A DNA stretch of 64,000 bases from Dimorphilus gyrociliatus (Eukaryota > Animalia > Annelida): assembly GCA_904063045.1 (NCBI GenBank), contig CAJFCJ010000009.1, positions 1,096,942 through 1,160,941 on the forward strand, written 5' to 3'. How positions within the stretch are numbered: the stretch's first letter is position 1; each line of letters opens with the position of its first letter. The notes below the pieces were generated by a model. It searched no databases, was not told the origin of the DNA, and saw only the letters and a program-made list of their open reading frames with translations. A program made the position numbers and the translations under genes. Of this stretch, positions 1-45,700 are shown in pieces.

Positions 1-3000
1 TCTTCAGGAATTTCCCGATGTTAACGATTACAAGTTGGAGAAATTGTTTGTCATGAGTCTTCTTTGGAGTTTCGGAGCTCTTTTAGAAAAAGATGATCGT
101 ACAAAATTGGTTCAATATTTAAGAAATCATCCTTCAGGATTTTGTATTCCTTGTGGTGACCCATTCGAATGGATGGTTTCAAAGTCTGGAAACTGGGAGC
201 ACTGGGAGACCAGGGTGCCTGAGTATCATTTTCCAACAGATTATATGCCTAATTTTTCATCTATTCTTGTTCCTAATGTTGACAACACTAGAATGGCCTA
301 TATAATAGACACAATATGTAAGCAGGGTAAAGCTGTATTACTCATTGGAGAGCAGGGTACCGCAAAGACAGTTATGGTAAAAAAGCATTTAAAGACATAC
401 AATCCTGATAAACATCTAACAAAGATTTACAATTTCTCCTCCGAAACTAAACCAATTACATTTCAAAAAACAATTGAAAGTTATCTAGACAAGAGAGTTG
501 GTTCTACCTATGGTCCACCAAATGGTAGAAAAATGACAATCTTTATAGATGATATAAATATGCCGGAAATTAATGAATGGGGCGATCAAGTTACTAACGA
601 AATAACAAGACAATTGATTGAAACAAACGGATTTTATAGTCTAAATAAGCCAGGAGATTTTAATACGCTTGTAGATTTGCAATTTATTGGCGCAATGATA
701 CATCCAGGCGGAGGTCGAAATGATATTCCTCAGAGATTAAAAAGACACTTTTCTATATTTAATTGTACTCTACCCGCCGATAAATCTATTGATAGGATTT
801 TTTCCACTATTGGCCTCGGATATTTTTCCGAAAAGAGGTCTTTCCCTCAAAGAATCATTGATCTCATACCAAAGCTAGTTGAAGCAACTAGGTGATACAA
901 CTCGACAATAAGCAAAAATTTTCGTTTGTTTTTATAACTTTCAAAGTTCCCCTTATATTCGAGTTTTATCATCTAACTTATAATCTTAATATTCAGATTA
1001 ATATGGCAAAATACTAAATCAAAAATGTTACCAACGCCAACCAATTTCCATTATGTGTTTAACTTGAGAGATTTATCGAGAGTATGGGAAGGAATGCTTA
1101 AAGCTAATTCCAATGAAATTACCGAGGAATACATGCTTCTTTCTCTTTGGAAATGCGAAGTCAGCAGAGTTTTATCGGATCGTTTTGTATCAGAATCTCA
1201 TATGAAATGGTTTAATACATGTCTTACTAAGGTGGCCACAAACTTATTAGGAGATAGACTCTTGGAGCAAATACCCAATGAGCCATATTTCGTCAATTTT
1301 ATGAGAGATCCTCCAGAGTGTGAAGATGACTTTGATGAATTTGAAGCGCAATTTTCAAGACCATACGAATTAGTTAATTCGTGGCAAGAATTGACAGAAA
1401 GGATAAAAATGTTTATGTCTAATATGAATGAACAAATAAGAGGAGCTAACATGAATTTAGTCCTATTTAGGGATGCTGTTATCCACATAATAAAAATAAC
1501 TAGGATATTTGGTTTTGAAAATGGAAACATGTTGCTTGTTGGAGTTGGTGGCTCTGGAAAACAGTCGTTAACAAGATTAGCCTCTTTTATACAAGGATTA
1601 AAAACATTTAGAATTACCCTGACAAGAGCTTATAACATAACTAACTTCATAGAAGATTTAAAAACTCTTCATAAACTCTCAGGGAAAGATGGTAAGGGGG
1701 TGGCATTTATATTTACCGATAACGATATTAAGGAGGAATCGTTTCTTGAATTGTTAAATAATTTACTTAGTTCTGGTGAAGTATCAAATTTGTTCCAGAA
1801 GGATGAACTTGAAGAAATTACCCAAGATCTTATACCTGTAATGAAAAGAGAATTTCCAAAAAAATTGATAACTTTCGAGAATCTTTATGATTTCTTTATA
1901 TCAAGATGTAGAAAGAATCTTCATGTTATTCTTTGTTTTAGTCCGGTCGGCGAAAAATTTCGATCCAGATCACTGAAATTTCCTGGTCTTATTTCTGGCT
2001 GTACACTTAACTGGTTTCAGGAATGGCCGAAGGATGCTCTCATAGCTGTTGGCTCTCAAATTTTATCCGATTTAGAAGTTTTGGGAGATGATAAATTGAA
2101 AGATGGTCTTGTTGATGTTATCGGAACAATACATGATAGAGTGTCCTCGTCTTGCTACGAATACTTCAAAAGATTTCGTCGAAGAACCTTTACAACTCCT
2201 AAAACTTACTTGACTTTCGTAAACATGTATAAACAATATTATACAAAAAAAATGTCAGATGTTAATGATACCCAAAAAAGGATCCTAACTGGTTTAGAAA
2301 AGTTGGCCGAAGCTTCTCAGAGCGTCGACATGTTAAACAAAGAATTGGCGGAAAAGGAGATATATTTAAGAAAAGCAACAGAAATGGCAGACGACGTTCT
2401 AACTCGTGTAACGATAAACAAAAAAGAGGCGGAAATTGCCAAAACTGAAGTAATGAAATTGAAGATCAAAGCCGCGTCAATTGTAGACGAAATAAGTATT
2501 GAGAAAGCTGCCGCTGAAAGTAAATTAGAAGCGGCTAAACCAGCTTTAGAAGAAGCGGAGAATGCCTTAAAAACAATAAAAGCGCAAGATATACAAGTTG
2601 TTAAAAAATTGGGTAAACCACCTCATTTGATTATGAGAATTATGGATTGTGTTTTAATACTTTTAAGAAGGAAATTGGATAAAGTTACGTTTGATCAAGA
2701 AAGATCATGCATAAAACCATCATGGAACGAATCATTAAAAGCAATGAGTCAGTCGTCGTTTTTAAATGATTTAAAGAATTTTCCAAAGGATACAATTAAT
2801 GGGGAAATGGTTGAACTACTTTTACCTTATTTAGAAGCGGACGACTATAATATTGAGGTGGCTAGACGAATGTGCGGAGATGTTGCTGGACTTTGTTCAT
2901 GGACTAGAGCAATGAGAAATTTCTATGAAGTAAATAAGGAAGTTATACCGCTTAAGCTTAATTTAGCTGTTCAAGAAGGAAGATTTATTACGGCAAAACG

Positions 3001-6000
3001 GGAAGAAGATGCTGCTCAAGTATTACTTGACAGTAAGGAAAATGAATTAGCTGAAGTGCAGAAGATGTATAATGAAGCTGAAATGGAAAAGCGTCGTTTA
3101 ATGGACGATGCCAAAATGTGTCAGGAAAAGATAGACATGTCAAATGAGTTAATAAACGCCCTTTCTGGAGAAAAACTTCGTTGGACTGAACAAAGTAGAC
3201 ATTTTAACGCTCAAAAGCGAAATATAATAGGCGATTGCGTAATATGCATTGCTTTCATTAACTACTGCGGACCATTCAATCAAGAATATAGAAATATCTT
3301 ACTTACGTCATGGAGGGAGCAATTACAAAAGGCTAAAATACCATTTACGATTGACATCGATCTAATTAGTACTTTGGCCGATTTGGCAACGATAGGCGAA
3401 TGGAATTTACAAGGTCTACCGAATGATGAATTATCTCTTCAGGGACTTGATCGTGATTTAATACCTTTAAATTAACAGTAATTAAGTATCCAATTAGGCT
3501 CAATTAACACGATCACGTCTTTTAAAATATAGAATGGTATTATATGCTCATCTTCAGGAAGATATCCCCTCCTTATTGATCCACAAATGCAAGGAAAATT
3601 ATGGCTAAAAAATAAAGGAGCTATAAACGGTCTTCAAATAACTCATTTATCACACAGGTATTTTAGAAATCATCTTGAAGATTGTTTATCAATGGGGAGA
3701 CCTTTATTGATAGAGGATGTAGGAGAAGAATTAGATCCTATTCTTGATAATATTCTAGATAACAATATTATAAGGATAGGAAGAAACTTTAAAATATGCT
3801 TGGGAGATAAGGAAGTTGATTTCGATCCAAATTTTCGATTATACATTACAACTAAATTACCCAATCCAGTGTTTAGTCCAGAAATTTCTGCCTCAACCAC
3901 AACAATCGATTTTACAGTTACAATGACTGGATTGGAAGATCAACTCCTAGGTAGAGTTATACAACAGGAGAGAGCCGAACTAGAAAAAGAGAAAATTGCT
4001 CTTGTACAAGAAATTTCAAATAACAATAGGAGAATAAAGGAATTAGAATCTGATTTATTAGAAAAATTAACTGATAGTACTGGCTGTTTAATTGAGAATC
4101 GAGAGTTAATAGAAGTTTTAAACGTAACTAAGAAAATGGCGGGAGAAATTGAACAAAAATTAAAAGTTGCTGCAGAGACCACCATTAAGATAAACTCTGC
4201 AAGAAATGAATATAAATTAGTTGCAACTAGAGGTTCAATACTTTACTTTCTTATTTGCGATATGTCAATGTTAAATCCTATGTATCAAACATCGTTGAGA
4301 CAATTTCTTAAAATATTTGATAATTCTTTAATGAAGAGTGAAAGATCATTGGTCCAAGGGAAAAGAATTAGGTCTATAATTAATACATTAACCCAACAAG
4401 TGTATCATTTTGTTGTAACTGGATTATATGAGAAGCATAGATTTTTATTTACTTTGCTTATTACTTTAAAAATTGATTTGGGCAGAAATTATGTCAAAAG
4501 GAATGAATTTGAGATCCTAATTAAAGGAGGTGCTAATTTGGATATCAAATCTACTGAACCTAAAATAGCTAAATGGATTAGTGATCATGCTTGGTTGAAT
4601 TTAGTATCTTTGAGTAGTTTAAATACTTTTAATGATATAATTAAACATATAAAGCTAAATGAAAAAGCTTGGAAATTATGGTTTGAAAAAGATGAACCGG
4701 AGGAAGAGGAAATACCAAAAAGTTATGGAAAAGCCTTAGATTCTTTTCGCAGGTTGCTATTGATTAGGTCCTGGTGTCCTGATAGGACCATATCTCAAGC
4801 TAGAAAATATGTTGCCGATTCTCTTGGTGATATATATACTCAGCCGGTGTTACTCGATTTGGAGAGAATCTACCAGGATAGCGATCCAAAATCTCCTATG
4901 CTATGCCTATTGTCTATGGGATCAGATCCTACTGCATTAATAGAAATCTTAGCTAAATCTAAGCAAACTGAAGTTAGAACTATATCTATGGGCCAAGGTC
5001 AAGAGATATATGCAATTAAATTTTTAAAACAATTTATGATAGACGGTGGCTGGATTTTATTACAAAATTGCCATTTAAGCTTAAGTTTCATGATTGAATT
5101 GGTAGACAGATTGTTAGAAAATGAGCACATTCATCCATCTTTTAGATTATGGATGACAAGTGAAGTACACGAAAAGTTTCCTATTACACTTTTACAAATT
5201 TCTACTAGATTTACTAATGAACCACCTGAGGGAATTAGGGCTGGTCTGAAGAGAACGTATGGAAGTATTACTCAAGAAGTACTAGATATGTCGAATATGA
5301 TGCAATGGAAGCCTCTTCTCTATGCAATTTCTTTCCTTCATTCGGTTATTCAAGAAAGACGGACGTTTGGCTATCTGGGATGGAATATTCCTTATGATTT
5401 CAACCAATCAGACTGGAATGCTTGTATTCAATTTATTCAAAATCATTTGGATGATGCATATAAAATTGGTATTTCTTGGACAACAATCCGCTATATGATT
5501 AGTGAGGTTCATTATGGAGGAAGAGTGACCGATGACTACGATAAAAATCTCCTTAAAACCCTAATAAAAGTATGGTTTTCTGATGATATTTTCCATGATG
5601 ATTTTACATTTTCTCAAGGCTATAGCCTACCATTTTGTACTACTTCAGCAGAGTATTTAACATTTATTGACTCTCTTCCAAAAGTTGATCATCCTACAGC
5701 ATTTGGACTTCACTCAAATGCTGATATAACAAAACAATCCAATTTTGCTAAAGATGTCCTCGATGGAATTTTATCAATTCAACCAAAAGAATCGGTTGGT
5801 GGGGAAGATGTAGGAGAAACTAGAGAAACTGTTGTCTATCGTTTAGCGGAAGATATCCTAACAAAATTACCTATAGATTATGATTTTCAAGATATCAAAC
5901 AGAAATTAAATAGAATGGGAAACATTCAACCATTAAATATTTTCTTAAAACAAGAGATTGATAGACTTTATAAAGTTATCTCAACTATGAGAATAACATT

Positions 6001-6646
6001 AACAAATTTAAAACTAGCAATTGAGGGAACGATAATCATGTCTGATCAATTAAAAGATGCTTTTAATAGTATTTACGATGCTAAAATTCCATTACAATGG
6101 ATTAGAATATCTTGGGAATCTTCCACTCTCGGATTTTGGTTTAGTGAACTCTTAGACAGGCATGAACATTTAACATCCTGGCTTAAGTCGGGTAGACCTA
6201 ACTCATTTTGGTTGGCGGGTTTCTTCAATCCACAAGGATTTTTAACTGCTATGAGACAAGAAGTTACTAGAAGTCATAAAGGATGGTCGCTAGATTCTGT
6301 TGTCCTATCAAATGATGTAACAAAACTCCTAAAGGAAGACGTTATTCAAGGTCCTTTGGAGGGCGTTTATATATACGGCTTGTATTTAGAAGGTGCCGGG
6401 TGGGATCGAAAGAATTCAAGATTAACTGAAGCTGTCAATAAAATTCTATTCTCTCCTCTGCCAATCATACACGTCTACGCTATCCAGAAAGATAAATTCC
6501 ATTGTTCGACAGCATATTCCTGCCCTGTTTATAAGAGATCCATCAGAAATAGTGAGAATTATGTGGCTAACATGAATTTGAGAACTACTCAATCGTGTGA
6601 TCATTGGATAATGAGAGGTGTTGCCATACTGTGCGACATTAAATAG
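1..6646 (+). CDS. DNAH5: Axonemal outer-arm dynein heavy chain, DNAH5/DNAH8 type, 5'-truncated by window edge; exons <1-891, 997-3442, 3533-6646
   Basis: AAA3 [12 protein letters not shown] and [19 protein letters not shown]4 [13 protein letters not shown], stalk, RYPLLIDPQ (AAA5), LQNCHL (AAA6), C-terminal GVAILCDIK. Splicing restores EATR|[14 protein letters not shown] and LSLQ|[16 protein letters not shown]5 versus DNAH8 cannot be separated by eye. Confidence 0.93.
892..996 (+). other. 105-nt GT-AG intron with a 21-nt imperfect inverted repeat starting at the donor
   Basis: 892-912 GTGATACAACTCGACAATAAG versus 952-972 CTTATATTCGAGTTTTATCAT (17/21 Watson-Crick plus one G-U); CTAAC branch-like motif at 973-977. 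Confidence 0.85.
3443..3532 (+). other. 90-nt non-canonical GG-AG intron with internal inverted repeat
   Basis: CAG|GGACTT...ATATAG|AAT is the only junction giving the DNAH5-type Q-NGII-x5-RYPLLIDPQ spacing; in-frame stops at 3473-3475 and 3530-3532. Confidence 0.72.
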
Positions 6647-7326
6647 TTATTCAAGACAGTATAAGTTGATATTTGCTATTTAAATCATTTTGATAAAGAA
6701 ACACTTGAATAAATCAATTTTGTGTATTTTTAATAGTTTATATTTATCCATATTTCCATCATTCATATTTCATAATTGTATGTAAACATAACATCTTACA
6801 TTTAGCATGAATCATCTTCCTATCCTGTGTCTTTCTTTTTGTTTAACAGGATAAATTAGATTAGGCCTTGTAAATTATACAGTATTAATTATTATAACTT
6901 GTCAATTATCAATCAATAAGCTAAATAAGAATCGTAATTTTCATAAATAAAATAAACAAATAAGAAAAAGAGAAGAGTTAGTATAGATTCTTTAATCCCA
7001 TATTTAGGATTGTAAGTTAATCTTTGAATTATATAAACTATATATTGCCATTTTTTTTTAAATTTACAACAATATATCAACAAAAGATTTCATATTAATT
7101 TCAAAAAATGAAGTAATAACATCAATATTTAAATTCTATTCCTTCCTTTAGTTTTTCTTTTAGACGCTCTTCTATTTAAACGCTCAAGTATAATTATCAC
7201 CACATACTTCTCTAACACATTTTCGTTTTCTTCTTCACTTTTTCCTCATTTGTTTCGTGACTTATTTTTTCTGGATATTCTTCTTTGCCTATAATTCTAT
7301 TCGATTAGTTGCAATCTTCTTACGTA

Positions 7327-8305
7327 ATGAGAGGAAAAAAGTTTGTATATTATACAAGTGAAATTACTATGAAATACTCTACAAGTACAACAACTACAAA
7401 ATCGAATTTTGAATTAAATAAAAAAAGAGAAGTTGTAAAAAAGTGGTCTAATTTAAAAGAAGCTGAAAGTGAAGATAGTATGGCTAATATAGTTGTTATA
7501 GTATTATCAATATTTGGCGTATTTAGCTTTATAAGGTGTACTTACAAAGCTAATAGAACTAATTAACTAAGGATCTAAATAGATATTTTAGCTTTGTAAA
7601 TTCACTTTTATTTAAAGTTGTCTGGCTTTCTTCGCTTATAAAATGGGATGGTTCAATAATTTCTTAAGTAATACTGTTGGCGATGAAAAAAGTACTCCTA
7701 AACGACCTTCTCAACAGCAACAATCAACTCCACCTAACCAAGCTCAACCAATGAATGATCATAAACCGAGAATGTCTATTAGTAAATATGGTATTATACT
7801 AGATGAAACTGAAAAACACGAAGCGGCTACGAAACCTATTTTAAAAAAAGAATCAACTGTAGCATCCCAGGGTCGACGTAGTAACATTGACGATGATAAT
7901 AATGTACTTGCGCAAAGCGTTATGAACATTGCAAATTTATTACAAAGTCAAATGAATATGAGTAGTTTAGGGAGACAATCGCTTATGGGTATGCCTTTAC
8001 CATGTAATTTCCCCAGTCAACTCAGTCAATTTGATATGAACTCGATGAATCAGCAACAATTACTCCCTTTACAATTTTTACTTGGTCAACAACCTCAGTT
8101 TCCTCAGCAAATAACAAAAGAAAATAAATCGTTCGATAACCTTCTAGCTACAATGGGTATGGGAGGGAATACAAGTGATACACAAGACGAAGAAGACGTT
8201 TCACAAGGTGGTCGTGTCTATAAGGGCACAAGAAGAGGAGGAAAATTAAAAGTAGCTGATAAACCGAGAGTAGCAACTTACTTAAGGGAGGAAAGGGAAA
8301 GTTAG
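7327..8305 (+). CDS. Orphan single-pass membrane protein, about 298 aa; exons 7327-7535 and 7618-8305 (start uncertain)
   Basis: Phase-2 intron AG|GTGTAC...TTAAAG|T joins ORFs 7309-7566 and 7643-8305 into one hydrophobic helix IVVIVLSIFGVFSFISCLAFFAY, followed by a Q/P/M-rich tail. No family recognised. Confidence 0.7.
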
Positions 8306-9089
8306 AGAATGAAAGACATTAAATAGTATTTAATTGAGTTTGTCGTGTTTTTTTTTACGATTATTCTATAAATCAATCCAAAGTATAAAACAAAAATAAC
8401 CTATTTTGGTAGTGTTTCATGTCAAAACGTTAATTTCTTAGCCCTATTCTTCATTCGTCCTTTCTAAAAAGTAAAACTGGTTTGAATAGGCTACATTTTC
8501 TCTTTAAACAAAGGTCATACAATAATAAAATTTTTTTCAAGGTTATACATTATTTCCAGCTAGTTCCAGGAGTATTGAATAGATCCTAAAGCCGCTTTCT
8601 AATACTAAAGCTATTAATAATGTTAAGACAGAATAATTAAAAAAAACGATAGAACATTCTATTAATTCATATTGATTGATAATTCAGCAGCACTGGGTGA
8701 CAAAATTATGGACTATGTAAACGCTGTCATAAACTTTCAAACAACTATTAAATAATTTAAATTACGTTCAAAGCGCGATGATGTGTCACAAAAATACAAA
8801 AATATCATTAAATATTCAATTTTCAAGGATAGTGCCTGTCACCAGAACGGAAAATAAAGTCCAGCATTAGCAAAATTATTTCATACGAAACCAGTAAATA
8901 AAATTACCTGGCGAATGGCACGATTAAGAAAAAACATATTTATTTATAGATATTGAAATAGATTACAGATATCTTATTTTTCATGTTTAAGATATGTTCA
9001 AATGATTAAATTCACTAACTAATGTATAACTCTATATATTAAAATATATTCGTTGGCTATAGATTAGCAGTTGGTCCGATCTACTTAAT

Positions 9090-10289
9090 CTAAATATTTG
9101 ATCGATTGTCCCATAAACAATTTTGATCCACTTCATCTATCGAATTATAGCCACACATCGCCATATTTGTTTCAAGGTCACTTTTTAATAGCGAAAACAC
9201 ACTATTTAATCCTTCGCTTCCCTGTAAAAATATAATTATTTATATTCAATCTTTAATTGTAGTGAAAGAAAGAATCTTACATTTACAACTAATGCACTGA
9301 TGACTGGCTTAGCTATAAATACCATTTTAGCTCCAAGAGCTAAAAATTTTAAGATATCACCTCCAGTTCTTATTCCACCGTCGGCGAATAAAAGAATTCC
9401 TGATGCTTTAACAATTGGAGCAATAGATCTAAAAGCATCAATTGTAGCTGGGTAATCGGAACTATTTCTTCCTCCATGATTAGATACCCAAATACCAGCA
9501 ACACCAGTTTTAATAGCTTCTCTTGCGTTTTTTGGTGAGAGAATACCTTTAACAATGATGGGTAAAGTTGTATACGTCATTATTCTTTTAACAGATTCCC
9601 ATGTATAAGAATCATTTGTCCACTTATTAACTGAGTTGGCTGCTTTTGCATAATCGCAAAAACCCTCAGGCATATTAGGCAAGTAAACAGTACTTCGAAA
9701 TTCTTCGTTTAGAGTGGGTCTGTCAGGACTGAACGAATTGTGATCTAGTGTTAAAACAAAACCGTTCACTCCTTCGCGTTCAATGCCCTCGATGTAGCTC
9801 CTTGTGATAAATTCTTCTGACAGCATATTGATTTGCATAAAAATCAATGTATTTGGAGCAGTTTTTCTTATGTCTCTCAAGGGTTGAGTACTATACTGAC
9901 TTACGACATATAATACTTTTGAATATTCAGCAGCCCTTGCTGTAGCCAATTCTCCATCTTTATTTGTTAGGGAATGTAAAGCGCAAGGTCCTATGCCAAC
10001 TGGCATGGAGAGTTCTTTACCCAAAAGAGTTATTTGGGTGGATCGTTTACTAACGTCAACACAAATATTTGGACATAAGAACACTCTAGAATACAAACAA
10101 AAATATAATTTGTATAAAAAATGATAACAAAGATAAGTTAATTGTATACTTCTGCAATGCTTCTTCATTTCTTTTCAATCCTGCTGAAGAGTTTGGTCCC
10201 TTATAAAAATAACTGTTAGTTAAATCATCTAACTTTTCTTTTGCCGCCTCCTCATATTGTTTAAGACTTGTAAAAGTTTTATCACTCAT
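9090..10289 (-). CDS. FMN-dependent alpha-hydroxy acid oxidase (HAO family), divergent, about 358 aa; exons 10289-10150, 10085-9281, 9221-9090
   Basis: YEEAAKEKL, STQITLLG..SMPVGIGP, LPIIVKGILS, VSNHGGR, DGGIRTGGDILKFLALGA; last exon GSEGLNSVFSLLKSDLETNMAMCG recovered by hand; GT-AG introns in consistent phase. Confidence 0.9.
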
Positions 10290-10772
10290 TTTTAAAATAC
10301 TCTGTATCTTCAACTGTTATTAATTAAGCGTAATTAGTACAAAATCCATAAGTATACATTCTATATACTATACTAAAATAAGAGTAAAATCAGTACCTGA
10401 TAGAGAACAGTAAGTAAATTTACAGTTAACGATTTCTGTGTATATATATATAACAACTTTATAATAATAAGTGATTGTTATCAGCCATTGTTGACACGTG
10501 GAATGTTCCAGCATTTCAAATAAAATTGCTTACTTTCTAACCCCATCTATTGAGGACTTCCTAGGTTCAACGAGCAGTGAACTAAACGGGGGCATGGAAA
10601 CAATAGTCTGGCAATTTGCCAGTATCCGTAAAAAGAAGATGACATCATTCTGACAAAATGTGTATAGGCCCATATTTTATTTTTAACACTCAAATTATAC
10701 AAAACAGCTATAAAGTATACAGCTATATCATAAGTTTTATTATAGAGAATTTAGATTGTCATAGTTGTCTGT

Positions 10773-12337
10773 TTAAGTTGGTCTAGCCATACGCATTAAC
10801 TTTTGACGCCACATTCGTTTAGCTTGATTGAACCAATCGGAAGATAGATGTAATATTTTCACTAATCTATCCCTAATCTCTATAATTTCGGTAGCAGTTG
10901 GATTTGTTGTTAAACCATCTATAGAAAAAATTACAATAACATATTATTATTTTATCGTGTTAAGTAATTTAAAATTTAATAAAGTCTATTATTAAAATAG
11001 TTCCAACCTATAAAAGGTTCAAATATGGGCCATTCTTGAAATACAATCTTTTCATTCTCTGATTCCGAAGAAATACAATTATCATTTAGTCTAACATTTT
11101 GAGCGAATTGAACATGCATCAAACGGTTTAATGCATGCCTCACTAAGCTTTTTATATCAGGAGCTCTGATAAGAGAAAAGTAAAACTTCTGGAAAAGAGA
11201 AAGAGTAATAAAGTATTAATTATAAATATTATATCGTCCTTATAAAAGTATAAATTATTCATACTAATGAATTCCTCATAGTTTCATCGTTTTTAACAAT
11301 AGTATTCACTTCCCGAAAGTGTTGTAGATTCGTTATTGGAAGATTTAACGTTTGAAGTATTGTTTCAAGTTCGACAATTTTCTTTTCTTCGGTTTTTTTA
11401 AGCATCTTTGTCAAACTAGAGAAGAATCCTCTACGATTCTTTTTCTCATCCGAAAGACTTTTATCAAGATCTACCATTCCAGCTACGTAGTTTCAAACGA
11501 TAATATACTTAAAATTTAGTACTTTTTATTGTTTTTTACATGTAGATTTATATATTAAAAATGTATAAAATAATAAGTTTACTGCGAATTTCTCCTCTTT
11601 CAGTTTTACATAACTTCTGCAATTGTAAACTCTGTTGATGTAGGTGTTTTATAGTTTGTAATATGTAGAGTAGCTTTTCGAGAACATAATAATCAAGTTC
11701 GCTATCAGATAATAAGTTATTTTCGAAAGTTACTGTCTCTTTCTTCTTATTATCTTTTGTAGAAAGTTTTCCTAATTGATTTGAGGAAGTTAGTGACTAA
11801 AAAGTCTGTCTTCTTTGTTTATAAAATAAACTTACCTTCCGGTTCCTTTCTAGATGATTCTTCAAATAGTTCCTTAACTATTTCATTGTTAGTTTCTAGT
11901 AATTTCTTCTTTCTACATATTTCTAAATTAGATAATTAATTTATTAATTAAATGTCTTGTTCATTTGTATTATTTTAATACAAACCTTCACTTTCCGAAG
12001 CTTTCCTCTTCGTAAGACGATTTCGATTATTATTAACTTTATTGTTGGCTTTTTGTTTCCTTGTAACATACTTTTTTGCCTCTTCATAACTATCAATGTT
12101 AATACTATTCAATACGTTATATTTATATTTAACCCAATTAAATTTCGTTCGATCATCATTCGGGGCTATCCTCGTTCGAATTATCGTTTCTAATTCTTTA
12201 TTATCCGATGTATCAATATACCAAAAAGTATTTTCATCCTGATTAATCCAACTGGATGGAATTATTAAATATTGAGAATCATTCCTATCATTTGTTAAAG
12301 CAACAGAATATGAATCTAAACGAAGAATATCGTCCAT
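10773..12337 (-). CDS. DUF4806/BEN-like protein, about 390 aa; exons 12337-11986, 11922-11836, 11771-11583, 11482-11265, 11188-11008, 10918-10773
   Basis: Five GT-AG introns keep one open frame. N-terminal IIPSSW segment and C-terminal IKSLVRHALNRLM...K.VFQEWPIF...SDWFNQAKR resemble DUF4806-type proteins from memory, not from a search. Confidence 0.65.
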
Positions 12338-12914
12338 ATTTTTTTGTATTTCTCTTCCTTAAATTCCTGTTTTCAATAACGAAATGGCAGTCTTTAGTTT
12401 CATTCAAATAACTTTAAATTAATGTGAAAGCTTTTTATAAGGCTTTTTTTCGACTATTGATTAGTTATTGGCTAATTGACATTGATGTAGGCGTGTCTTA
12501 GAAAGAGAGTATTGTAGTTACTACATCACATAGACTAATCGAAAACAGAGGTACTCTTGGGGATTTTAAAGGGTTCATTAGAGGGTTCTCTAGCGAAGGT
12601 AGTATTTATTTTTAAAAAAAAACACTATTCCTTAGATACTACTAGTCAAAAGATCCAACCATTGACGCCTTGTTGACACATAATCAATGACGCTTCATCT
12701 TAAATTTTTCCGAAATAACTTTCAATTGAATTTCTTTTCTTTCTCGTTTTACTTTAATTCTCTATTCAAATACTAAAAACATTAAACGTTATTGATATTA
12801 TTTCCTTTTTTTTTATATAAAAACAAAATAAATAATATTTATACCAGTAAGAAGATATTTTTACTTTGTCTATAGGCTTACTTAGATATATACTTTTTTT
12901 TGTATATTTTAGGT

Positions 12915-14597: not shown

Positions 14598-14903
14598 TAA
14601 AATTCAATTCGATAAAAATAAATATCGGGATAGTATCTCTCTAGTGTATGCAGTTCTCTGTAATGAAGATTTCAATAAATTGTACATGACTATATTCAGT
14701 ACGAATATTTTATATATATAATACATGAATTCTTTTGTCTTTTATTCTCTATACAAGTAAAGGTTTACTTAAATTAGCGTGTTCGTTTTTTTGTATTTTC
14801 AACTTCTTAAGTTATACTAAATTTAGTTTGTATACACTTGGTTTTTGGAAAGTCAGATGTTGGAAAACTTTCTTCTATATATCAATCGTATTTCTGCTCC
14901 TCA

Positions 14904-15304
14904 TTACTTCTTCCCAGATTTTTTAATACCGCTTCCACCTGAGATAATTAACGTTTTATATATATATATATATTTTTATGCTAGAATATTATTAAATTTT
15001 AGATATTAACCCATAGGTCCTTTTTTAGAAGCTTTTTCCTGCATTTCTTTCAAGGCCTTCTGTTCTTCTTTTTGCTTTTGCTTGAATTTAAGGTCTTCCT
15101 GTTTAAATAGATTAGGATATGTAAAAATTGTTCGGAAAAATATGTTTAGAACAACTATCACTAACATCGTCCATATCTTGTGAATCCTTTTTAGGGTTTT
15201 TAAGTGGTTTTTTTTTTCCTCCTATATAAATTTAATAAAACCGAAATATTATATATTTTGACTAAAATTTTATGGCGTTTTCTTTTACCTTGTCTTCCAG
15301 ACAT
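14904..15304 (-). CDS. TMA7: Translation machinery-associated protein 7, 64 aa; exons 15304-15289, 15221-15166, 15098-15011, 14938-14904 (absent from ORF track)
   Basis: Spliced product [64 protein letters not shown]; all introns GT-AG and in phase. Confidence 0.95.
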
Positions 15305-18622: not shown

Positions 18623-18632
18623 GTCACGTGAC
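18623..18632. promoter_or_regulatory. Perfect CLEAR-type palindromic E-box GTCACGTGAC about 150 nt upstream of the GALNS ATG
   Basis: Exact match to the TFEB/MITF CLEAR consensus next to a lysosomal enzyme gene; function inferred. Confidence 0.6.
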
Positions 18633-26559: not shown

Positions 26560-29142
26560 TTAATCTTCTTCCAACAATCGCATAAAAACTCTGAAATATG
26601 ATCCTTCATCGCTTTCATTTGTATCTAAAGCAAATGTAGATTTATCTTTTATACTGTGAACAACCTGATCGGTAACTAGAACATATATTCCATCTTTTTC
26701 TATGGTATATACTTCTCCTAATAGGCTAATATCAACGCCTAGTAAAATCGCAAGTTTTTCTTTTAATTGGGAAATTGTAGTGTTGTCTAAATAAATTGCG
26801 TGATAAACATTTTTTCTAGATAATTCGAGATTCTTTCTCTGTTTCTTAAAATAGTAAGCTTCGTCATCTGAAACGTTACCATCATTTTCTTTGTGACGCT
26901 TTGAGGTGGGATTGGGAACTTTTATTGGAGGATTATCCCTGAAAGCATTGCCGGAGAAATTACAGCGTTTTCCCTTTACTAATTTTCGAATTGGCTTGAT
27001 ATCCTAAAAAAAATCTCTCTTTGATGTAAGCTATAGAAATTGACTATAATATTATTATACCTTAGTAGTGTTAAATTTAAGAGATGTTAGCAAAGTATCT
27101 TCATCTGCTGAGGAGAGCGAACCTTCAGATCTTACTCTCGTTATTGTATGCTCTTCTCCTTTTTCGCTTGCTCTTCTACTTGATCTAGTTTCTTGACATA
27201 CAAACAGAGTTAATCTTGGCCTCACATTTTTCACTTGAAGAGCGTTGTCTAATCGAATACCATCAGCTAAACCGCAAATTTGTATTAACTCGTCTCTTGT
27301 CAACCGAAGTAAATCACTGCCGGAAAAATTCTCAAACACTCGACTATAACTTGAAAACCTAATGTTAGTAAAGAAAAAATATTGTGGTTTAGTAATTGTC
27401 TTCCTTAGCGCAAAGTTCTAACAAAGAAATATTTTATACCTGTTATTATTTAACCAATCAACAACTTCAGCCGAAGTTGAATTCGCAGAAACATTTGAAC
27501 TGATAGTCTTTATTGTGGTTGAAGCAGTTGTAGTAACATTTGTCGTTGTTAGACATTTTACCGTTCCTGAAGGACTTGCTATAGGGGTATTTGATGGAGT
27601 GTCTGGCGGATTTTCTAATTCAAAGTTTACAGTTTTTGGATTCATAATCAAATAATGTTGAACGACTTCAAGAGGTACATCTACTAATTTCGTAACATTT
27701 GATACAGGTCTGTATTTAGCACGTTCAGATTCTGGCTTTTTTTCAATTTTCTCCCTATCTGTTTTATGCTTTCTATCAGCTCCCTTTGGTTTGAAAACTT
27801 TAATCTGAAAAAGTATATTAAAAAGTGTTATATAGTTAAAAGTAAAATTATTCAAAATCTTTTTCACCTGACAAGCTGCACAGTGTAAAATTTTCTCTCC
27901 ATTTTCAGTATACGTTTCTACTTGAATTCTAAATGGTACTCCTTTCTCTCCTCCGTGTTTTCGTTGCGTGAATTCAGTGCTTATACAATGAACCTTTATA
28001 AATAAAGAACATTTCTCGCTCCAATGAACTGTTACTGCATTCAAAACATCTGGATGCACTACGATATCTGTTATGCCAAATGATAAGGGAACATCAACAT
28101 CCATAAATCTTCTTCCGGGATGATCGTTCTTCCAACTTTCTAACTGCTCTTTTTCAGAATATTGCATTCTCCTTTCATGAAACAGAACCCTTACGATGCT
28201 CTGGAGAGGACCAATACTGTAAAAACATTTTGTTCGCATTGAAGTTGATTCTAGGTGAATTATATTTTTTACCCATTGTCCTTTCTAGCAAGCTTCAATT
28301 CATAAGATTGCGCTTGATTAAGATACGTGAGAGTTTCTTCTGTTTCCTTAGTAGCGGCAGAAGTTGCAGCAACCAAAAGATAATCTAAAGGAATCTTTTC
28401 TTCAGCAGTTGATATAATAAGAGTAGAGGCATGTTCTATCGTATCATTTTCATCTTCATCCTTAAATTTCGGTAGTGCATGTAGAGCATCGCTGTTAAAA
28501 AAGGTTAATTAATAAGATATGACTGGACTAATAGAGGAAATTGAAGGTTTCGTATAGGTTAATTTAAAAAATTTTAATTGGATCTCTCAATTGCTTTTTA
28601 AAAAAAGAAAAGAAATTAAAATAAAAAGAGCAATTCTTCAAGATATTAAAGTTTAACAAGTATTGAAAAAAATAAGATATTAATTATCTTAATGATCAAC
28701 AAAACAAGAAATAAATTGGGAGCAGATACTTTTAAAAAAAAGACAATTCTTTTGCTCTGAATAAAAGAAAGCTCTTCTCAGACCATCTAATAGAATATTT
28801 TATTAGACTGGATTCAAAAAAAAATAATATTAGATATCTAAGAGCAGAATATCATTTTCATGCAAACTTGGATATAATATCCTCACATGGGTCAATCTCA
28901 AGAGGATAAATATAAAAAATATTTAGACGGACGTAGAATTTAATAGTGATAGACTTGATTAAGTTATTTCTAAAAGAGTGTATATTCAAGGTATACTACC
29001 TCATGTTATATGTGTAATTGTTAACATCAAAGCCAAGTCCCTGCAGGGATCCCTCGAATGTATCAGCCAATCCATCATTTATTTCATCAGCTTTAATAGA
29101 ACTGAACAAGGAGAGTAGATTTGCGTTATGTTCGTTTGACAT
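26560..29142 (-). CDS. TFCP2: LSF/CP2-family transcription factor (TFCP2/UBP1 type) with CP2 DNA-binding domain, SAM domain and C-terminal YHAIYL domain; 5' end may extend upstream
   Basis: [85 protein letters not shown]; stop TAA at 26562-26560. Confidence 0.9.
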
Positions 29143-39700: not shown

Positions 39701-42700
39701 TTGCCTATCCTCGGAAGAGGAGACCGCCCTATCTATTATTGACCCAACTACTGTCAGCTTGGAACTTATAGGAAAAACTATGCCTCATCATCACGATTCA
39801 TTCTCGAGCGGTTTAATGGAAGTTCAGAAACGTGTTGAACCTGTTCTTGAAGTATCTTTCACCTCACTAAATATTAGATTATCTTACAACGATTCTAAGC
39901 TATTTCTGGCCATTTTGAAATCACTTCCGAAGCAAGCACAAAGTATTGTCGGCTCGAAATCAAAGAATGTTGTATCATCTAAATCCAGTTACAGCGTTGT
40001 TGATCAGGAGGGTATGTATTATTTTTTTAAAAACAATTTAAATGTTAACATTTAGAACTTTTAAATAGAATATCTAACTGAGAATTTGCGTTCCCTGGGC
40101 TATCCTACAGAAAAATGTAAACTTGCTCTGAAGGAGGCAGATAACGATGTTGAATTAGCAAAACAAATCCTAATTCAAGGTAAAAATTTTACATCATCCA
40201 GATCCATGCTTGAATTGAAGAATGACGAAAAGAAGGAAAATTTATCGATACACTCTTATGAGGTAAGTCTGTAGAATTTCCCTATAGTTTTGGATAAAAG
40301 AGTGACTAATAAATTTATTTCAACTTTAGATTAAAGCTGGTAATATATGCATTTGTCTAATTGACGATTGCTTGGATGCAGACGTACCCCTACTTGAATT
40401 AACAATGACATGTGAATATTTCAGATTTACTATACTTTTATTTATTAAAATAAACTATAATGTGCTTTTTTGTAGCTGTTCAATTACATCAAGTTTTTCA
40501 TGGAGCGATTAGAGGGCGCGCTAGTTTTAAATTTGCACTAGATTCTTACAATAGAAGGCTTTCTGGTTGGGAACCTGTTATTGAACCTTGGCAGTGCAGA
40601 GTTAACTGGGAGCAAAGTTATTCAGATAGCTCGGAGGGTTCTCAAAGAGATTTAACTGTTAAAATGGAATGTCAGTCTCTTTTTGTATATTAAAATAATT
40701 AATCAAATTCTATTTCTGACTTTTAGCGAGAGATGTTATCAATGTTAACTTAACGAAAACGTTAATGCAACTCTACTCTCAAACAAAAGATAAATGGATG
40801 GAAGATTATTATGAAGCAGCACAACCTGTATCTTTTGCAGTACCAAAGCGTCGAATACCATTTATTCCCTTCACTATTCGAAATGAAACTGGTGTTAATC
40901 TGAACTTTGCCACTATTGTTACTACCCCTACTAGATTTGCTGATGAAACTGTAAAAGAAACAAAACGAAATTGGACGTTAGTGGAAAAAGATGGTCAAAT
41001 CAATTTTAAATTTCAAGAGAGAGAAAAAACTAGACATAAAGTATAATGACATTCTTTATTTCTTTCATTATTATACTTTCATTTCTTTTAATTCCCAGAA
41101 TACGCATCAATTGAAAATACAACAAGTCATAATAAAAGTTAGCGGATGGCAGGAGGCGAGCGCTTTATCTGTAGATAAAACTGGCGTTTTCTTTAGAGAC
41201 GTGACAGCCGACAATGAAACATCATCTTCTGTTGTAAGTAACAATTAGAAAACCTTTTGATTTTTAAAGATAATTTTTTTATATTCCTCAATCATATTTT
41301 TATAGTTTTCAAGCCAACGAAGTGCTCGCATTGTGTTTGATATATCTTTAGAAGGTACTGCAAAGAAAGTTATTACAGTTCGATCCGCTCTGCTCGTTCA
41401 GAATAAACTGCCTGATAAAATTGAATTAAAACTTACAGGGCAAACTAGTTAGTATTTTTTTAGTTCTACTTTGATTATTTTTTATCTAAATTTTTATCTT
41501 TCTCATTAGCTCTTATGGACAAAGTTTATGAATTGGATACTGGAACAAAATTCGCTGTTCCTTTACCGTATGTCTCATCAAGAATATATGTTCGTCCAAG
41601 TGGATGGGGATCAAATTACTGCTCTAAAGATATCTATTGGAGTCATGCAACAAAAACAGCAGAATTTCAAAGTTATGTTCGAAGTTGTGATTGGTCTGCT
41701 GATACTTCAGATAGCACATATAGGTAGGTATTAAACTGTTATTTTTTATTGAAAGAATTTAATATATTTAATTATTAGATTTTGTGTATCCGTTTATCGC
41801 CAAAAATATCCTCAAGAAGAAAAAATTGTTTCCAAGACAATAACTGGCGGCACTTCAGTGTCTTTCAACTCTTATCCTCAACCGGCTCATTTAATTACCC
41901 TTTGTCCTCCTATAACATTCAGAAATTTGTTACCTTTTGATATTACACTTGATATTTCGGGTACAAGCATTAAGAACGAACTAAAAGCAGGCAGTGAAGT
42001 GTTTCTAAGAGACGCTAATATTGAAGAAGATATAAGTTTACGAATAGATATGGAATACTTTAAACAATGTAAAACCCTTATCATATCGAAGTCAGACTGG
42101 ATGAATATTTGCAATACCTATAAAATTATGTTTGAAGATAAAAAGGAAAGACTTTTACAATTATTCTTAGAGATGAAAGAAGGTTTAGGAGGTTGTTTGA
42201 AAATGGTTCTCTATGGAAAATTCTGGATTCTTAACAAAACTGGCTTACCTCTATTATTTAAGCAGGACGATGCTTCAACTGAAGCAGCTGGCCAATTCGA
42301 TGAACACGAGGCTGCTCGTTGCGTTACACCTTTTGTGTTTTCATACGCAAATCACGATGCATCAGAGGCGTAAGTAAAATATATTAGTACATAAATAATA
42401 ATTTACCAGCTATAACTCAAAATAGACTTTTAATGAGAATTGGAAGAACTGTTCACGGTTCTGCAAAACCATCATGGTGCAGGAGAATTAACCTAATAAA
42501 TGGAATATCAAGAAGAGATCTTCATGTCACTCCTCATGACAAAAGAAAGCCTGACTGGTATAATATTTTTATATACAAATGAATACAATTTTTAATTGAA
42601 TATCTTGACTGTTCAATTAGGGTATACGATATTGGTATTGAAGTTTGCCCCGGAAAAGGGCAATATAGTAGAACGAAAATGGTTACGTTGACTCCCAGCT

Positions 42701-45700
42701 TTCACTTTGAAAATCGAACAAATTATAGATTATTATTTGCCCAAGAATTTTTTACAAGAGGAAAAGGATTCGAGAACATCCATGGTCAATTAGTAGCCCT
42801 ACCAAAGTGTAATATGGCATTCCATTGGCCAAGAGTTGATTTGGATCAATTGCTAAGTGTTAGACGCCTGGATATTGCAGATTGTCATTGGTCTGGTGGT
42901 TTCAAAATAGATGTTGTTAATTCTTTCCATGTGAACATGAGGTTTAAAATTGTATATTTAATTACATTATTTACCTGATAAATGTTTCATTCATATAGGG
43001 ATAGTGAAGGAACTTGCCACTTTCTACAAGTGGATGTCATTCTAGAGCAAGCAACCTTTTACACAATTTTCACTGATGCCCAAACTATGCCTCCACCGTA
43101 TCGAATAGATAACTTGTCAGAGGTTCAAATACAATATTTCCAAACTAAAACATCAAATGATCAATTAAGGACTATAATCAAACCAAACACTAAAGGTATA
43201 TCTATTTGTTCATTGAATTATTACTTGTTGCTATCAATTTATACCGTCCATTCTAATTGCAGTGTCTTATGCATGGGACGAACCAACACAGCCTCATCAC
43301 ATCACTCTATCCGTACCTGGCGGTAGTAGTTCTACTTATAACTTGGACGTTCTAAAAGATGGCGATAAACTTTGCTACGAAAATTTCATTTATATTGCAT
43401 TTACTGGAACCTTTAAAACGGATGGAATTCCAGGTGGAGAAGAGCTTGTTTTAGATGTACCAAGCGAAAATAATGGCTACAAAGTCTACCTGAAACGAAA
43501 AGAGGCAGGAAAACGGTCACAATTATGGAGAATGAATACTGAAGGATATTTAATACATGAAGGTTCAATGCCACCGTCAGATCCAAGATCAACGCCAAAA
43601 CCGGCTACCAATGCTTACGTTCTAGATATTGATGATATAGCTATTCAACCAAATAAAGAAACGTCTCTTGTTATAAGGAAGAAAAACGATAGAAGAAAGG
43701 GTACACAAACATGGAAATGTGTGGTTTGTATTTTATAACATTAGAATAAAAAAGTACAAGTACTAAGCTATGTCATGCTTCTTTTAGATGGGCACTTTAC
43801 AGCTACGAAATGCTAATGCTCCCTTCATAGTACAATCGCAACACGGTTTAGAAGGAATGATAGATGGTATTTAGAATAAAACTTGTATTATATCAGTTTG
43901 ACTGTTGATAATAATTTATTTATTTTCATAAAAAAAAGGTGGTGAAGCTATTTTAGTTAGATCTAACGATCTAATAGTATCCATTGATTCTATTCCAATA
44001 TATAAAATGGTTGGTTTCAAGAAAGTCCGACCTGGTTCCGGATTATTATCTGTTAAAGTCACGATGGATGGACCAACAAGAGTTCTTGAAATTACTGATG
44101 TTAGATATGCGGTAAGTATTAGATAGGAAAGTATTACTTGCTTCAATATTTTAAAGATATAAAATATCTATAGGGACATTTAAGAAATCCAATTGGAAGT
44201 TCAGTTGATAAGTTGGAATCAGAAAAAGCGAAATCCGATGAATTATCGGAGAATAGAAGCGTTGATGTAAGAAATTTTTCATATTTTACTTAAAGCTACT
44301 ATATTTACATTTTGTGAACAGATATCAGTAATTCTGACAGAAGGTGTAGGAGTGTCATTGATAAATCATTTACCAGAAGAACTATTGTATATAAGATTAA
44401 AAGAGATAAGTGTACATTGGAACTTAAATGCTGACTCGGAACAGACTATGCAAGCAAGCATTCATTCCATCGAAGTAATGGAAAATTACACAATAACTTT
44501 TACGTAACCTTAATTAAACTCCCTTAACTGTTATATATAGGCTGACAATCAACTCTTTGGCTGTATCAATCCAAAAGTACTTCAAATCCCAGTTAAGAAG
44601 AATGAAATTGAAAATTCAGCACCAGCACTATTTCTAAGCTTTACAAAATTAGATTCAAAACGTTGGAATATTGACGTTTTCAAGGTAACATTTTCAATAT
44701 GGTATATCATATAAATTCAATTACAATTTTTATGAATAGAATATAGAGATAAAATTACGAGCTGTTATGCTAAGATTAGAAGAGATTTTGCTATGGAAGT
44801 TTATTCAATTTTTTACCAGTTTATCCCAATTGATAGAAATTGATGAAGATAAGAGAAATTCATTATCAGAGTAAATTATCTAATTAGCAAATATTATTAA
44901 ATAATAATGAAATATGATCATTATAGTAAATGGACGGCAACTATTGGTGTTGATCTAAAGCGATACTATGCTGGACGGCTATCTATTGAAGCAAATAAAT
45001 TGTTACTTTCATTAAAAACGAGACCAGAACTTCCAGAAGACCTGAAAGCTATTAAGAGGCAAATCGGTGTACCTTTGGTCAAATTTGATGAAGCTAATGT
45101 TGAATTGGAATCTTTTGTTAAGGATCATTTATTTAATACAAAGAAATTGCTCAAAGAAGCTATTTTATTACATTTTAGAGAGGTAAGGGACTATATATAT
45201 ATACAGTACATATGTTCTAAATTCACTAAATTCTTTTTCTCGTACTAAAAAAGGAATTCCGTAGTCAAGCTGCTCAAATTTTAGGATCCGTCGATTTCCT
45301 TGGAAATCCTGCCGGTTTAATTAATGATGTATCCGAAGGAATTTCAAGTCTAATTGATGGTAACATTCCTGGTCTATTTGCAAACGTTACTCATGGCGTA
45401 TCCGACTCCACGGCGAAAGTTATGGGATCAGTGTCTGATGTAGTCGGTCTTCCTTTTGATAATAAACATGAACAGAAAAGAAGAGAAATTAGAGAACAGG
45501 CCAGCGGACCGTGGGATTCTCTGAAAGCCGGGGGAAAAGGCCTAGGCCACGGACTATGGGGTGGCGTTAAAGGAGTTATTGATCAACCCATTAAAGGCTA
45601 CAAAGAGAATAGAGTTGGAGGGGCAATTATTGGTATTGGTGCTGGATTTTATGGTCTATTGGCAAAGCCAATGGCTGGTGTATTAGACTTTGCAACCGGC

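Follow-up and report, generated by a model that had tools for sequence, protein, structure and literature searches.

The window examined here, the full 64 kb of Dimorphilus gyrociliatus DNA that was analyzed, includes an axonemal dynein heavy chain gene, the gene for N-acetylgalactosamine-6-sulfatase (GALNS), a lineage-restricted membrane protein gene, and VPS13-family, glycogenin-like and coiled-coil genes. Seven short introns in these genes, hereafter hairpin introns, contain a stem at or near the 5' splice site. In the typical geometry of the class, a segment that begins 3-12 nt inside the 5' exon and ends 10-30 nt into the intron pairs with the 3' part of that intron. A preliminary description of this DNA had proposed that such stems recur in unrelated genes and might assist intron definition.

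Results

Two hairpin introns interrupt the dynein gene. The first, at 892-996 (plus strand, GT-AG, 105 nt), has arms at 889-912 and 952-975 that form 20 Watson-Crick pairs and one GU pair out of 24, with a branch-like CTAAC motif at the end of the 3' arm. Its junction leaves no gap in the alignment with DNAH5/8 homologues, its helix is highly significant against shuffled sequence (p=0.0005; MFE -26.8 kcal/mol, z=-3.97), and the site is spanned by a single fish exon. The second, at 3443-3532 (plus strand, 90 nt), is a non-canonical GG-AG intron with arms at 3432-3455 and 3508-3531 and a core of 11 pairs out of 12 at 3444-3455/3508-3519 (helix p=0.0045; MFE z=-1.5 to -1.85). The GG-AG product aligns without gaps and retains the conserved NGII motif. 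An in-frame GT-AG alternative at 3453-3557 was rejected because it creates a 5-residue gap in the alignment. Neither fish nor bee dynein has an intron at the 3443 site. Every intron remaining in the dynein region is hairpin-ended.

The GALNS intron at 19128-19202 (plus strand, 75 nt) has the non-canonical borders GA-AG and is the longest inverted repeat of the window. Its arms lie at 19119-19156 and 19167-19204, and the base of the stem is a perfect 15-bp helix that reaches beyond the intron by 9 nt on the 5' exon side and 2 nt on the 3' exon side (helix p=0.0005; MFE z=-4.06). The alignment to human GALNS (4fdi) runs through residue 103 upstream of the intron and resumes downstream at residue 106, and the junction accounts for two residues. 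The site is internal to an exon of another animal's GALNS and to many exon-sized ORF fragments. A possible imperfect direct repeat of 7-9 nt at this intron is also a near-palindrome.

No shift-equivalent boundary of the 3443 or 19128 intron yields GT-AG, GC-AG or AT-AC. The dynein GG-AG and GALNS GA-AG introns are two predicted non-canonical introns whose borders are fixed by gapless protein homology. Both of these homology-supported non-GT introns fall in the hairpin class, a link that is biased in that our gene finder accepted GT and GC donors only, so that these two had to be entered manually. Left to itself, the finder had picked wrong GT-AG alternatives in both genes.

The membrane protein gene carries a GT-AG intron at 7536-7617 (plus strand, 82 nt), with arms at 7533-7565 and 7576-7608 (helix p=0.002). 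Here the exon end at 7523-7535 is copied twice, inverted at 7541-7553 and in direct orientation at 7588-7600 (direct repeat p=0.016). A related lineage (L005) has an intron at the same site, where the reading frame requires splicing. This ortholog shares the weak GTGTA donor and lacks a significant helix (p=0.36, MFE z=+0.9), so the stem is dispensable in the L005 lineage. Judged by this comparison of sequences, the predicted intron predates its stem. For the two dynein introns and this one, the pairings reported in the preliminary description were confirmed: 17 of 21 positions at 892-912/952-972, 11 of 12 in the GG-AG core, and 16 of 18 at 7536-7553/7588-7605 with a perfect 12-bp core. Its observation that different introns share no arm sequence also held, and the arms are unrelated.

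Three further introns are weaker or prediction-only members of the class. In the VPS13-family gene, the GT-AG intron at 41041-41098 (plus strand, 58 nt) has a 12-bp stem that joins 41038-41049 to 41068-41079 (helix p=0.0025; donor-anchored p=0.004; MFE z=-2.85). It could be a chance outlier, as about 0.3 such results are expected in 78 tests, and its flanking exon has no detectable homologues. The GT-AG intron predicted at 50449-50574 (minus strand, 126 nt), in the unconserved C-terminal part of the glycogenin-like gene, was called from our own gene finder and in-frame stops only. Its arms, at 50560-50586 on the 5' side of the RNA and 50443-50469 on the 3' side, span both splice sites (helix p=0.012; MFE -32.5 kcal/mol, z=-3.27). 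The weakest of the seven is predicted at 63876-63950 in the coiled-coil gene (minus strand, GT-AG, 75 nt), where a GU-rich stem, approximately 63928-63948 with 63894-63912, begins at intron positions +2 to +5 (anchored p=0.003, unanchored p=0.02).

These introns were evaluated within a set of 78 short introns (median length 65 nt) predicted by our own gene finder, with a homology check on a few only. For each, the best ungapped helix was compared with 2000 dinucleotide shuffles. Five of the 78 reached p<0.01, two of them at p<=0.0005, where 0.8 would be expected; among controls, 2 of 160 windows of 100 nt in other non-coding DNA and 2 of 160 in exons did so. When the donor was held fixed and the intron interior shuffled, p<0.01 was again found in 5 of 78, and the other p-values were approximately uniform (KS p=0.33). 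Most introns were at chance level (median helix z of -0.01). Outside the hairpin set, the 71 introns had a median MFE z of +0.3, and the share of their donors that pair in the MFE fold was in line with that of shuffles (0.59 vs 0.56). The lowest MFE z-scores (-3.8 to -1.85) belonged to the same six introns that top the helix test, and the MFE folds that take in the 5' splice site had z of -1.5 to -4.1.

The preliminary description had suggested folding introns against dinucleotide-shuffled controls. Applied to the 78 introns of the window, this analysis set apart the six with the lowest z-scores and left the 71 outside the hairpin set at chance. Donor-in-stem architecture is thus non-random in approximately seven of 78 introns, about one in twelve; as a general or frequent mode of intron definition it was not borne out. 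Among the short pairings proposed to start at the donor, 41041 stood, and with a longer stem than first described, whereas those at 44112 (p=0.31), 39256 (p=0.45), 43196 (p=0.50) and 13011 (p=0.96) are at chance level.

The 5' splice site lies inside the helix in all six of the strongest cases, compared with 15 of the other 72 introns (Fisher p=2e-4). Hairpin introns are longer than the rest (median 82 vs 64 nt, p=0.009), and their donor scores are not significantly lower (p=0.21). The arms reach both intron ends in 19128, 3443 and 50449; in 892, 7536 and 41041 the 3' end lies 9-21 nt beyond them. A branch-like YTRAY motif occurs in five of the seven, though the motif is weak across the set (43/78). 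The proposal that the 3' arm ends at the branch region holds clearly for 892-996, with its CTAAC; elsewhere the best motif is at the start of the 3' arm or absent. The first intron dinucleotide departs from the GT or GC of U2-type introns in 3443 (GG) and 19128 (GA) and is GT in the other five. All seven have G at +1, a 3' AG and a T-rich tract, which points to removal by the spliceosome.

Signs of a mobile element were sought in the same sequence. No second copy of any arm or hairpin intron occurs within the 64-kb window, and direct repeats between exon end and intron are at the level of shuffles (2/78 and 3/78 at p<0.05). The only target-site-duplication-like repeat at the hairpin introns is a shared AG or AAG, for which the splice consensus accounts. 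Given the single copies and the lack of such a duplication, a transposon family is not demonstrated in the window.

Discussion

Three of the hairpin introns, the two in dynein and the one in GALNS, can be placed against other animals. In all three cases the site is intronless in the animals compared (fish and bee for dynein, another animal for GALNS), and the genes that hold them have been stripped of ancestral introns. The explanation we favor, to which we would give about an even chance, is that the hairpin introns are a small class of end-paired, mostly new, ordinary U2-type spliceosomal introns, whose stems are footprints of their origin rather than a general device for intron definition. 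The preliminary description had raised the idea that the stems record intron birth, and the three testable cases fit it.

The stems would mainly reflect where the intron sequence came from. Inverted-repeat DNA may have landed at an AG|G site within an exon. Alternatively, a local inverted duplication could have supplied the arms, as the A-A'-A repeat at 7523-7600 may illustrate. Such inserts might survive by virtue of a spliceosome that, in this genome, tolerates a variable +2 base. Once present, a stem would hold the end of the 5' exon beside the 3' end of the intron, and could in this way aid a weak donor without being a general requirement. Against this account, enclosing the 5' splice site in a helix normally impedes U1 binding. 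Two observations also run against parts of it. In 19128 and 50449 the pairing extends 9-12 nt into ancestral coding sequence, which speaks against a simple insert, and the greater age of the 7536 intron relative to its stem speaks against the favored explanation itself.

The stems could instead be functional and under selection, bringing the 5' splice site or exon end beside the branch or the 3' splice site, and be needed where the donor is weak or other than GT and the intron exceeds the length of about 60 nt favored by this spliceosome. We regard this as unlikely, albeit with some evidence in its favor: both non-GT introns bear stems, the 5' splice site is covered in six of six, hairpin introns are the longer ones, and in the Dimorphilus genome short introns are reported to be the most efficiently spliced (PMC7854359). 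Against it, the L005 ortholog of 7536 keeps its GTGTA donor without a stem, donor scores are not significantly reduced in the class, and burying a donor usually inhibits splicing. Nor do the stems shorten introns to a normal length, as had been supposed: they enclose 73-120 nt and leave an abnormal effective length of 6-21 nt between the 3' end of the stem and the AG, compared with the usual 55-70 nt.

A stronger version would make these a Dimorphilus class of structure-defined introns, in which pairing of the exon/intron junction with the 3' end of the intron replaces U1 recognition or recruits a structure-triggered pathway. We think this quite improbable. If it were true, inverted-repeat DNA landing in exons of essential genes would be removed exactly, even with a GA or GG donor. 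Dimorphilus would then provide the first example of such a system among protostome animals, and an active route by which introns are gained.

It is also conceivable, though distinctly improbable in our judgment, that the stems are inhibitory, hiding the 5' splice site so that the introns are retained or detained, either as regulation or as mildly harmful young introns. Hiding a 5' splice site within a stem is well established as a means of reducing its use. X1 contigs, which appear to derive from RNA, cross 3443-3532 and 7536-7617 unspliced and contain no spliced path there, which also weighs against the favored explanation; the same material has three spliced minus-strand GT-AG junctions (6676-6799, 7289-8400 and 7316-8400). 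However, contigs can show presence and not absence, the X1 contig over dynein could represent pre-mRNA or antisense transcription reading through the gene, and the conserved dynein and GALNS proteins require the spliced form.

We hold it very unlikely that the introns leave by SOS-type splicing (AKAP17A/CAAP1/RTCB), the spliceosome-independent, structure-triggered excision of base-paired inverted repeats from mRNAs. Pairing by itself sets off that pathway, whose conservation extends from C. elegans to human (PMC12779559). At 19128, 3443 and 50449 each of the two cut sites is bordered or overlapped by the inverted repeats, and two boundaries are other than GT-AG. But G at +1, a 3' AG and a T-rich tract in seven of seven introns would be an odd outcome of such a process (approximately 1/1000 by chance for the two non-GT cases), SOS splicing is imprecise where these essential genes need one exact junction, and its known triggers are longer repeats (54 nt).

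Two readings have a very small probability. The introns might be precursors of mirtrons or 3'-tailed mirtrons, in which a stem from +1 yields a small RNA after splicing and a tail of 6-24 nt is trimmed; stems that start at or near +1, arms of 20-38 nt, short 3' tails and 10-nt loops in 7536 and 19128 would suit this, and the geometry fits 892, 7536 and 19128, yet pairing begins in the exon, a feature that mirtrons do not call for, the AU-rich stems have many mismatches, there is no Rfam match, and the 7536 stem is not conserved. Finally, chance complementarity in short AT-rich introns, where about 56% of donor positions pair in the MFE fold of shuffled introns, explains four of the five short cases (p 0.31-0.96) and could explain 41041 and 63876 as the tail of 78 tests, but as an account of everything it conflicts with the excess of significant helices over expectation and over both controls and with the placement of helices on the 5' splice site, and for 892, 19128, 7536 and 3443 it is ruled out by the shuffle tests.

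The origin of new animal introns is an old open question, and records of introns that were made by transposons or that end in hairpins come chiefly from protists and tunicates. Dimorphilus is a slowly evolving, well-annotated annelid. If the class of end-paired introns holds genome-wide, it would offer a tractable animal case for intron birth and for spliceosomal tolerance of GA and GG donors, in which one can ask whether end-pairing aids splicing or only marks origin. Annotation pipelines limited to GT/GC-AG introns will mis-model such genes, as in dynein and GALNS.

Several known systems invite comparison with these introns. Mirtrons and 3'-tailed mirtrons form a hairpin from the first intron base and leave a short unpaired 3' tail with the branch and AG; the Dimorphilus pairing, in contrast, reaches into the exon and forms weak stems rich in AU. 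The 'zipper' stems of yeast lie between the 5' splice site and the branch point of long introns and leave the signals free. Intra-intron pairing would likewise bring splice signals closer in Dimorphilus, but here the 5' splice site is itself within the helix. The tunicate Oikopleura dioica has a compact genome, short introns and non-canonical G*-AG borders (GA-AG, GG-AG, GC-AG). To our knowledge, end-pairing has not been described for its G*-AG introns. In both animals a variable +2 base is tolerated while G at +1 and the 3' AG are kept (related tunicate work, PMC13326754).

SOS splicing resembles our case in that paired inverted repeats mark the segment removed, GU-AG is not required and the pathway is conserved in animals (Zhao et al. 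2025, PMC12779559). It differs in being imprecise and rarely GU-AG-like, whereas the Dimorphilus introns need a single exact junction and keep spliceosomal hallmarks. The non-conventional introns of euglenids, to which the preliminary description had likened these, also have ends held by secondary structure and non-canonical borders (PMC11282704, PMC12501133). This likeness did not hold up: the CAG/CTG pairing of +4..+6 with -8..-6 is absent from the dynein, 7536 and GALNS introns, and the borders are GN-AG in every case, with G at +1 and a 3' AG.

Like introners (Gozashti et al. 2022, PMC9860276), the hairpin introns, most of them probably new, have terminal inverted repeats and lie in gene regions of an aquatic organism that hold few other introns, with lineage-specific positions at both dynein sites and in GALNS. 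Unlike introners, which are defined by many near-identical copies, they have none in this window and their arms are unrelated. Introners are reported in just two animal groups, and annelids are not mentioned (Gozashti et al. 2022, PMC9860276).

The introns of Amoebophrya and Fritillaria borealis offer a further parallel, and one that favors the explanation by origin. The Dimorphilus introns differ from them in that G at +1 and the 3' AG are kept and only +2 varies, in that no repeated family or clear target-site duplication was seen, in forming a small minority of introns, in a stem that arose in an older intron, and in their annelid host. In all of these organisms, however, complementary motifs (8-20 nt in Amoebophrya and Fritillaria) join the 5' and 3' ends of the intron, short repeats overlap the exon/intron borders, some borders are non-canonical, and the positions are species-specific (PMC7789003, PMC11282704).

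Hairpins over the 5' splice site

The preliminary description of this DNA had proposed that introns of unrelated genes recurrently begin within a stem. Measured against shuffled controls, the proposal holds for a few outliers and fails for the bulk of introns. We compared the best ungapped helix of each of 78 introns, taken with 12 nt of flank, with those of 2000 dinucleotide shuffles. Five introns reached p<0.01 where 0.8 would be expected, two of them at the floor of 0.0005, while the median z of -0.01 lies at chance level. The six top introns are 892-996 in dynein, 19128-19202 in GALNS, 7536-7617 in a membrane-protein gene, 41041-41098 in a VPS13-family gene and 3443-3532, again in dynein, all on the plus strand, and 50449-50574 in a glycogenin-like gene on the minus strand. 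In all six, the 5' arm starts 3-12 nt within the exon and hence covers the 5' splice site; the best helix lies over this site in 6/6 top introns versus 15/72 others (Fisher p=2e-4). Control windows of 100 nt reached p<0.01 in 2 of 160 cases in other non-coding DNA and in 2 of 160 in exons.

When the donor was kept fixed and the interior alone shuffled, the same outliers emerged, together with minus-strand intron 63876-63950 of a coiled-coil gene (p=0.003); the remaining p-values look uniform (KS p=0.33). The shorter donor complementarities that had been listed as further cases are at chance level in this test (44112, p=0.31; 39256, p=0.45; 43196, p=0.50; 13011, p=0.96). ViennaRNA folds gave the lowest MFE z-scores to the same six introns, and a median z of +0.3 to the other 71. 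Even in shuffles the MFE fold pairs about 56% of donor positions, which is why short complementarities are so easily spotted by eye in this DNA. Terminal pairing was not found in 16 longer introns.

Gene content and intron prediction

The window belongs to Dimorphilus gyrociliatus, a miniature annelid, and is AT-rich (about 31% G+C). Its dynein is a DNAH5/8-like axonemal heavy chain of the outer-arm type, and the further genes identified are GALNS, a glycogenin-like gene, adaptin, a VPS13-family gene, an FMN-dependent dehydrogenase, NAPRT, aspartyl beta-hydroxylase, CCDC39 and a carnitine acyltransferase. No Rfam family or tRNA was found in the 64 kb. Long A-run/T-run inverted repeats cluster at 26152-26528 (I3, I5, I13), in low-complexity non-coding DNA adjoining the gene at 26560-29142.

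Introns were predicted with our own dynamic-programming gene finder, which combines 3-periodic Markov coding scores with splice-site matrices and was retrained three times; a simpler ORF-bridging finder was dropped, its output being mostly false introns. The finder returned 93 introns. Its short introns appear typical of the genome, with a median of 65 nt against a published 66 bp for D. gyrociliatus (PMC7854359); their donors are GTAAGT, GTAAAT or GTTAGT and their acceptors TTTTAG or ACAG. Homology led to three corrections: 892-996, whose removal gives a gap-free alignment at the junction to many dynein homologues, was added, 3443-3532 replaced the finder's 3453-3557, and 19128-19202 replaced its 19086-19202. 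The resulting test set of 78 introns of up to 200 nt consists of predictions, few of them checked by homology.

Two introns with non-canonical donors

Without 3443-3532, dynein reads ...LSLQ directly into the next exon and aligns free of gaps to nine homologues. The sole in-frame GT-AG alternative, 3453-3557, cuts out the conserved NGII block and opens a gap of 5 residues in the alignment. Boundary shifts that yield an equal product give GG..AG, GG..TA or AG..AT, none of them canonical. In GALNS, the upstream exon ends at residue 103 of human GALNS (4fdi) and the downstream exon starts at 106; exactly two residues must be supplied at the junction, which sets the intron at 19128-19202. It reads GA..AG, with shifts GG..AA, AG..TA and AA..TT. 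In both introns +1 is G and +3 is A, a T-rich tract is present and the intron ends in AG. Splicing of these GG-AG (3443-3532) and GA-AG (19128-19202) introns is predicted from protein homology.

Two other readings of these segments were dropped. Against translational bypassing of segments of 3n length, 3443 has neither matching take-off and landing codons nor a stop directly after take-off. A U12-type reading of 19128 draws on TTCCTTTAA near its 3' end; at its 5' end the intron does not resemble the U12 consensus, and the motif runs up to the AG.

Non-GT donors occur in 2/7 hairpin introns, an association biased by a finder that took only GT/GC, the exceptions having been added by hand. Run with GA and GG allowed, the finder prefers GG-AG and GA-AG introns to weak GT donors in an orphan gene (10919-11004 and 11166-11274, minus strand) and a GG-AG intron to a weak GT donor in the VPS13 gene (41727-41778, plus strand). 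These three candidates are gene-finder predictions only, and none has a significant stem.

The membrane-protein intron and its counterpart in a relative

A protein search found contigs of a related lineage (Logan SRR23372229, SRR31984834) that contain the dynein end and the membrane-protein gene; their coding sequence is about 75% identical to that of Dimorphilus at the nucleotide level. In the relative (L005:2790-3666), the first exon is kept and an 81-nt GT-AG intron with donor GTGTATTTAC lies at the same site. The relative's frame requires a splice at the equivalent of 7536, and it has no ATG at the position where the annotated Dimorphilus protein starts; 7536-7617 is therefore a real, conserved intron. 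The Dimorphilus gene (7480-7535 joined to 7618-8305) is recorded as 220 residues from the ATG at 7643. Its upstream exon (MANIVVI...) is conserved in the relative and is in frame only with 7536-7617 spliced out, and the annotation probably lacks the first exon and the transmembrane start of the protein.

In the relative's intron no helix reaches significance (best score 9.0, p=0.36; MFE z=+0.9). The stem at 7536 is thus specific to Dimorphilus, was born inside an older intron and is dispensable for splicing that weak donor. The 13 nt that end exon 1 (TTAGCTTTATAAG, from 7523) reappear inverted at 7541-7553 (+6 to +18) and in direct orientation at 7588-7600 in the 3' arm. This local A-A'-A layout, spanning 7523-7600, is the pattern that fold-back or template-switch repair would be expected to leave, and the stem looks like a local inverted duplication more than a foreign insert.

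RNA evidence

One sequencing run, X1, behaves like RNA, as judged from exact joints of three minus-strand GT-AG introns (6676-6799, 7289-8400 and 7316-8400) and a 117-nt coverage hole at 7318-7434. Introns 7289-8400 and 7316-8400 share a donor and differ by 27 nt at the acceptor. This minus-strand transcript probably represents the 3' portion, after splicing, of the FMN-dependent dehydrogenase gene (9090-10289). The plus-strand membrane-protein gene lies entirely within the transcript's 1.1-kb intron, and the final exon of the transcript overlaps dynein at its 3' end.

X1 contigs cross 3443-3532 and 7536-7617 unspliced, and the spliced path is absent from the run. Since 7536-7617 is a genuine intron, these contigs are no argument against splicing. 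They may derive from pre-mRNA or from antisense transcription over dynein, or stem-bearing introns may be spliced poorly.

Age of the intron sites

Mapped onto the Dimorphilus protein, the exon boundaries of a fish dynein gene place both Dimorphilus intron sites (aa 296.7 and 1112.0 in the window's part) within fish exons, and a bee gene is continuous over the second (3443-3532). At least 12 fish intron sites have no Dimorphilus counterpart in the first 1150 codons of this region. Across all of it (1-6646, about 2150 codons) there are two introns only, both at new sites, and this comparison of gene structures suggests that the ancestral introns were lost wholesale and that two new ones were then gained. 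The GA-AG site of GALNS (aa 116.3) falls inside an exon (aa 94-128) of another animal's GALNS gene, L004, and inside many exon-sized ORF fragments from other genomes. Judged by the few animals compared, all three testable hairpin introns thus appear to occupy intron-free sites, in host genes otherwise stripped of old introns. The exon flanking 41041 has no detectable homologues.

A caution comes from the one ordinary intron compared, GALNS intron 2 (19554-19856, 303 nt, donor AG|GTCACT), which is also off the compared animal's site: it lies 5 codons upstream of the L004 intron site (after TSRRG). This offset could be intron sliding or independent gain.

Shape of the hairpin introns

Hairpin introns are longer than the others (median 82 nt versus 64 nt, p=0.009), with no significant difference in donor or acceptor scores. 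Lengths divisible by three occur in 5/7 of them (105, 90, 75, 126 and 75 nt) versus 19/71 others (nominal p=0.026), and each of the five has in-frame stops. In 19128, 50449 and 3443 the entire intron is enclosed by a helix that extends to both splice sites, and in 892, 7536, 41041 and 63876 the helix stops 9-21 nt upstream of the AG. The earlier suggestion that the 3' arm stops at the branch region is borne out by 892, where a good CTAAC motif lies at the arm end, and by no other hairpin intron. As had been described, the arms of different introns are unrelated. No arm has a second copy, and no repeat family was found, within the 64-kb window. With the exception of 7536, there are no direct repeats resembling target-site duplications beyond the AG/AAG given by the splice consensus.

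Origin of the stems and comparison with known introns

We favour the view that the stems are footprints of intron origin. Inverted-repeat DNA would have been inserted at AG|G sites, or a local fold-back duplication would have arisen, with a host spliceosome that tolerates a variable +2 base. A helping role is possible, in which the stem would tether the 5' exon to the 3' end of the intron. The proposal that stems shorten introns to a workable length does not fit, as 73-120 nt lie within the stems and 6-21 nt remain outside. SOS-type excision is imprecise and seldom uses GU-AG-like sites (PMC12779559). Against it stands the persistence of G at +1, the T-rich tract and the final AG in both non-GT introns, which argues for U2-type splicing.

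The Dimorphilus genome paper makes no mention of non-canonical or hairpin introns (PMC7854359), and a large introner survey makes none of annelids (PMC9860276). For the introns described here, neither a repeat family nor target-site duplications were found in the 64-kb window, in contrast to introns with inverted-repeat ends in Amoebophrya and Fritillaria (PMC7789003, PMC11282704). They resemble the latter in their new positions, greater length, inverted repeats at the ends and relaxed donors.
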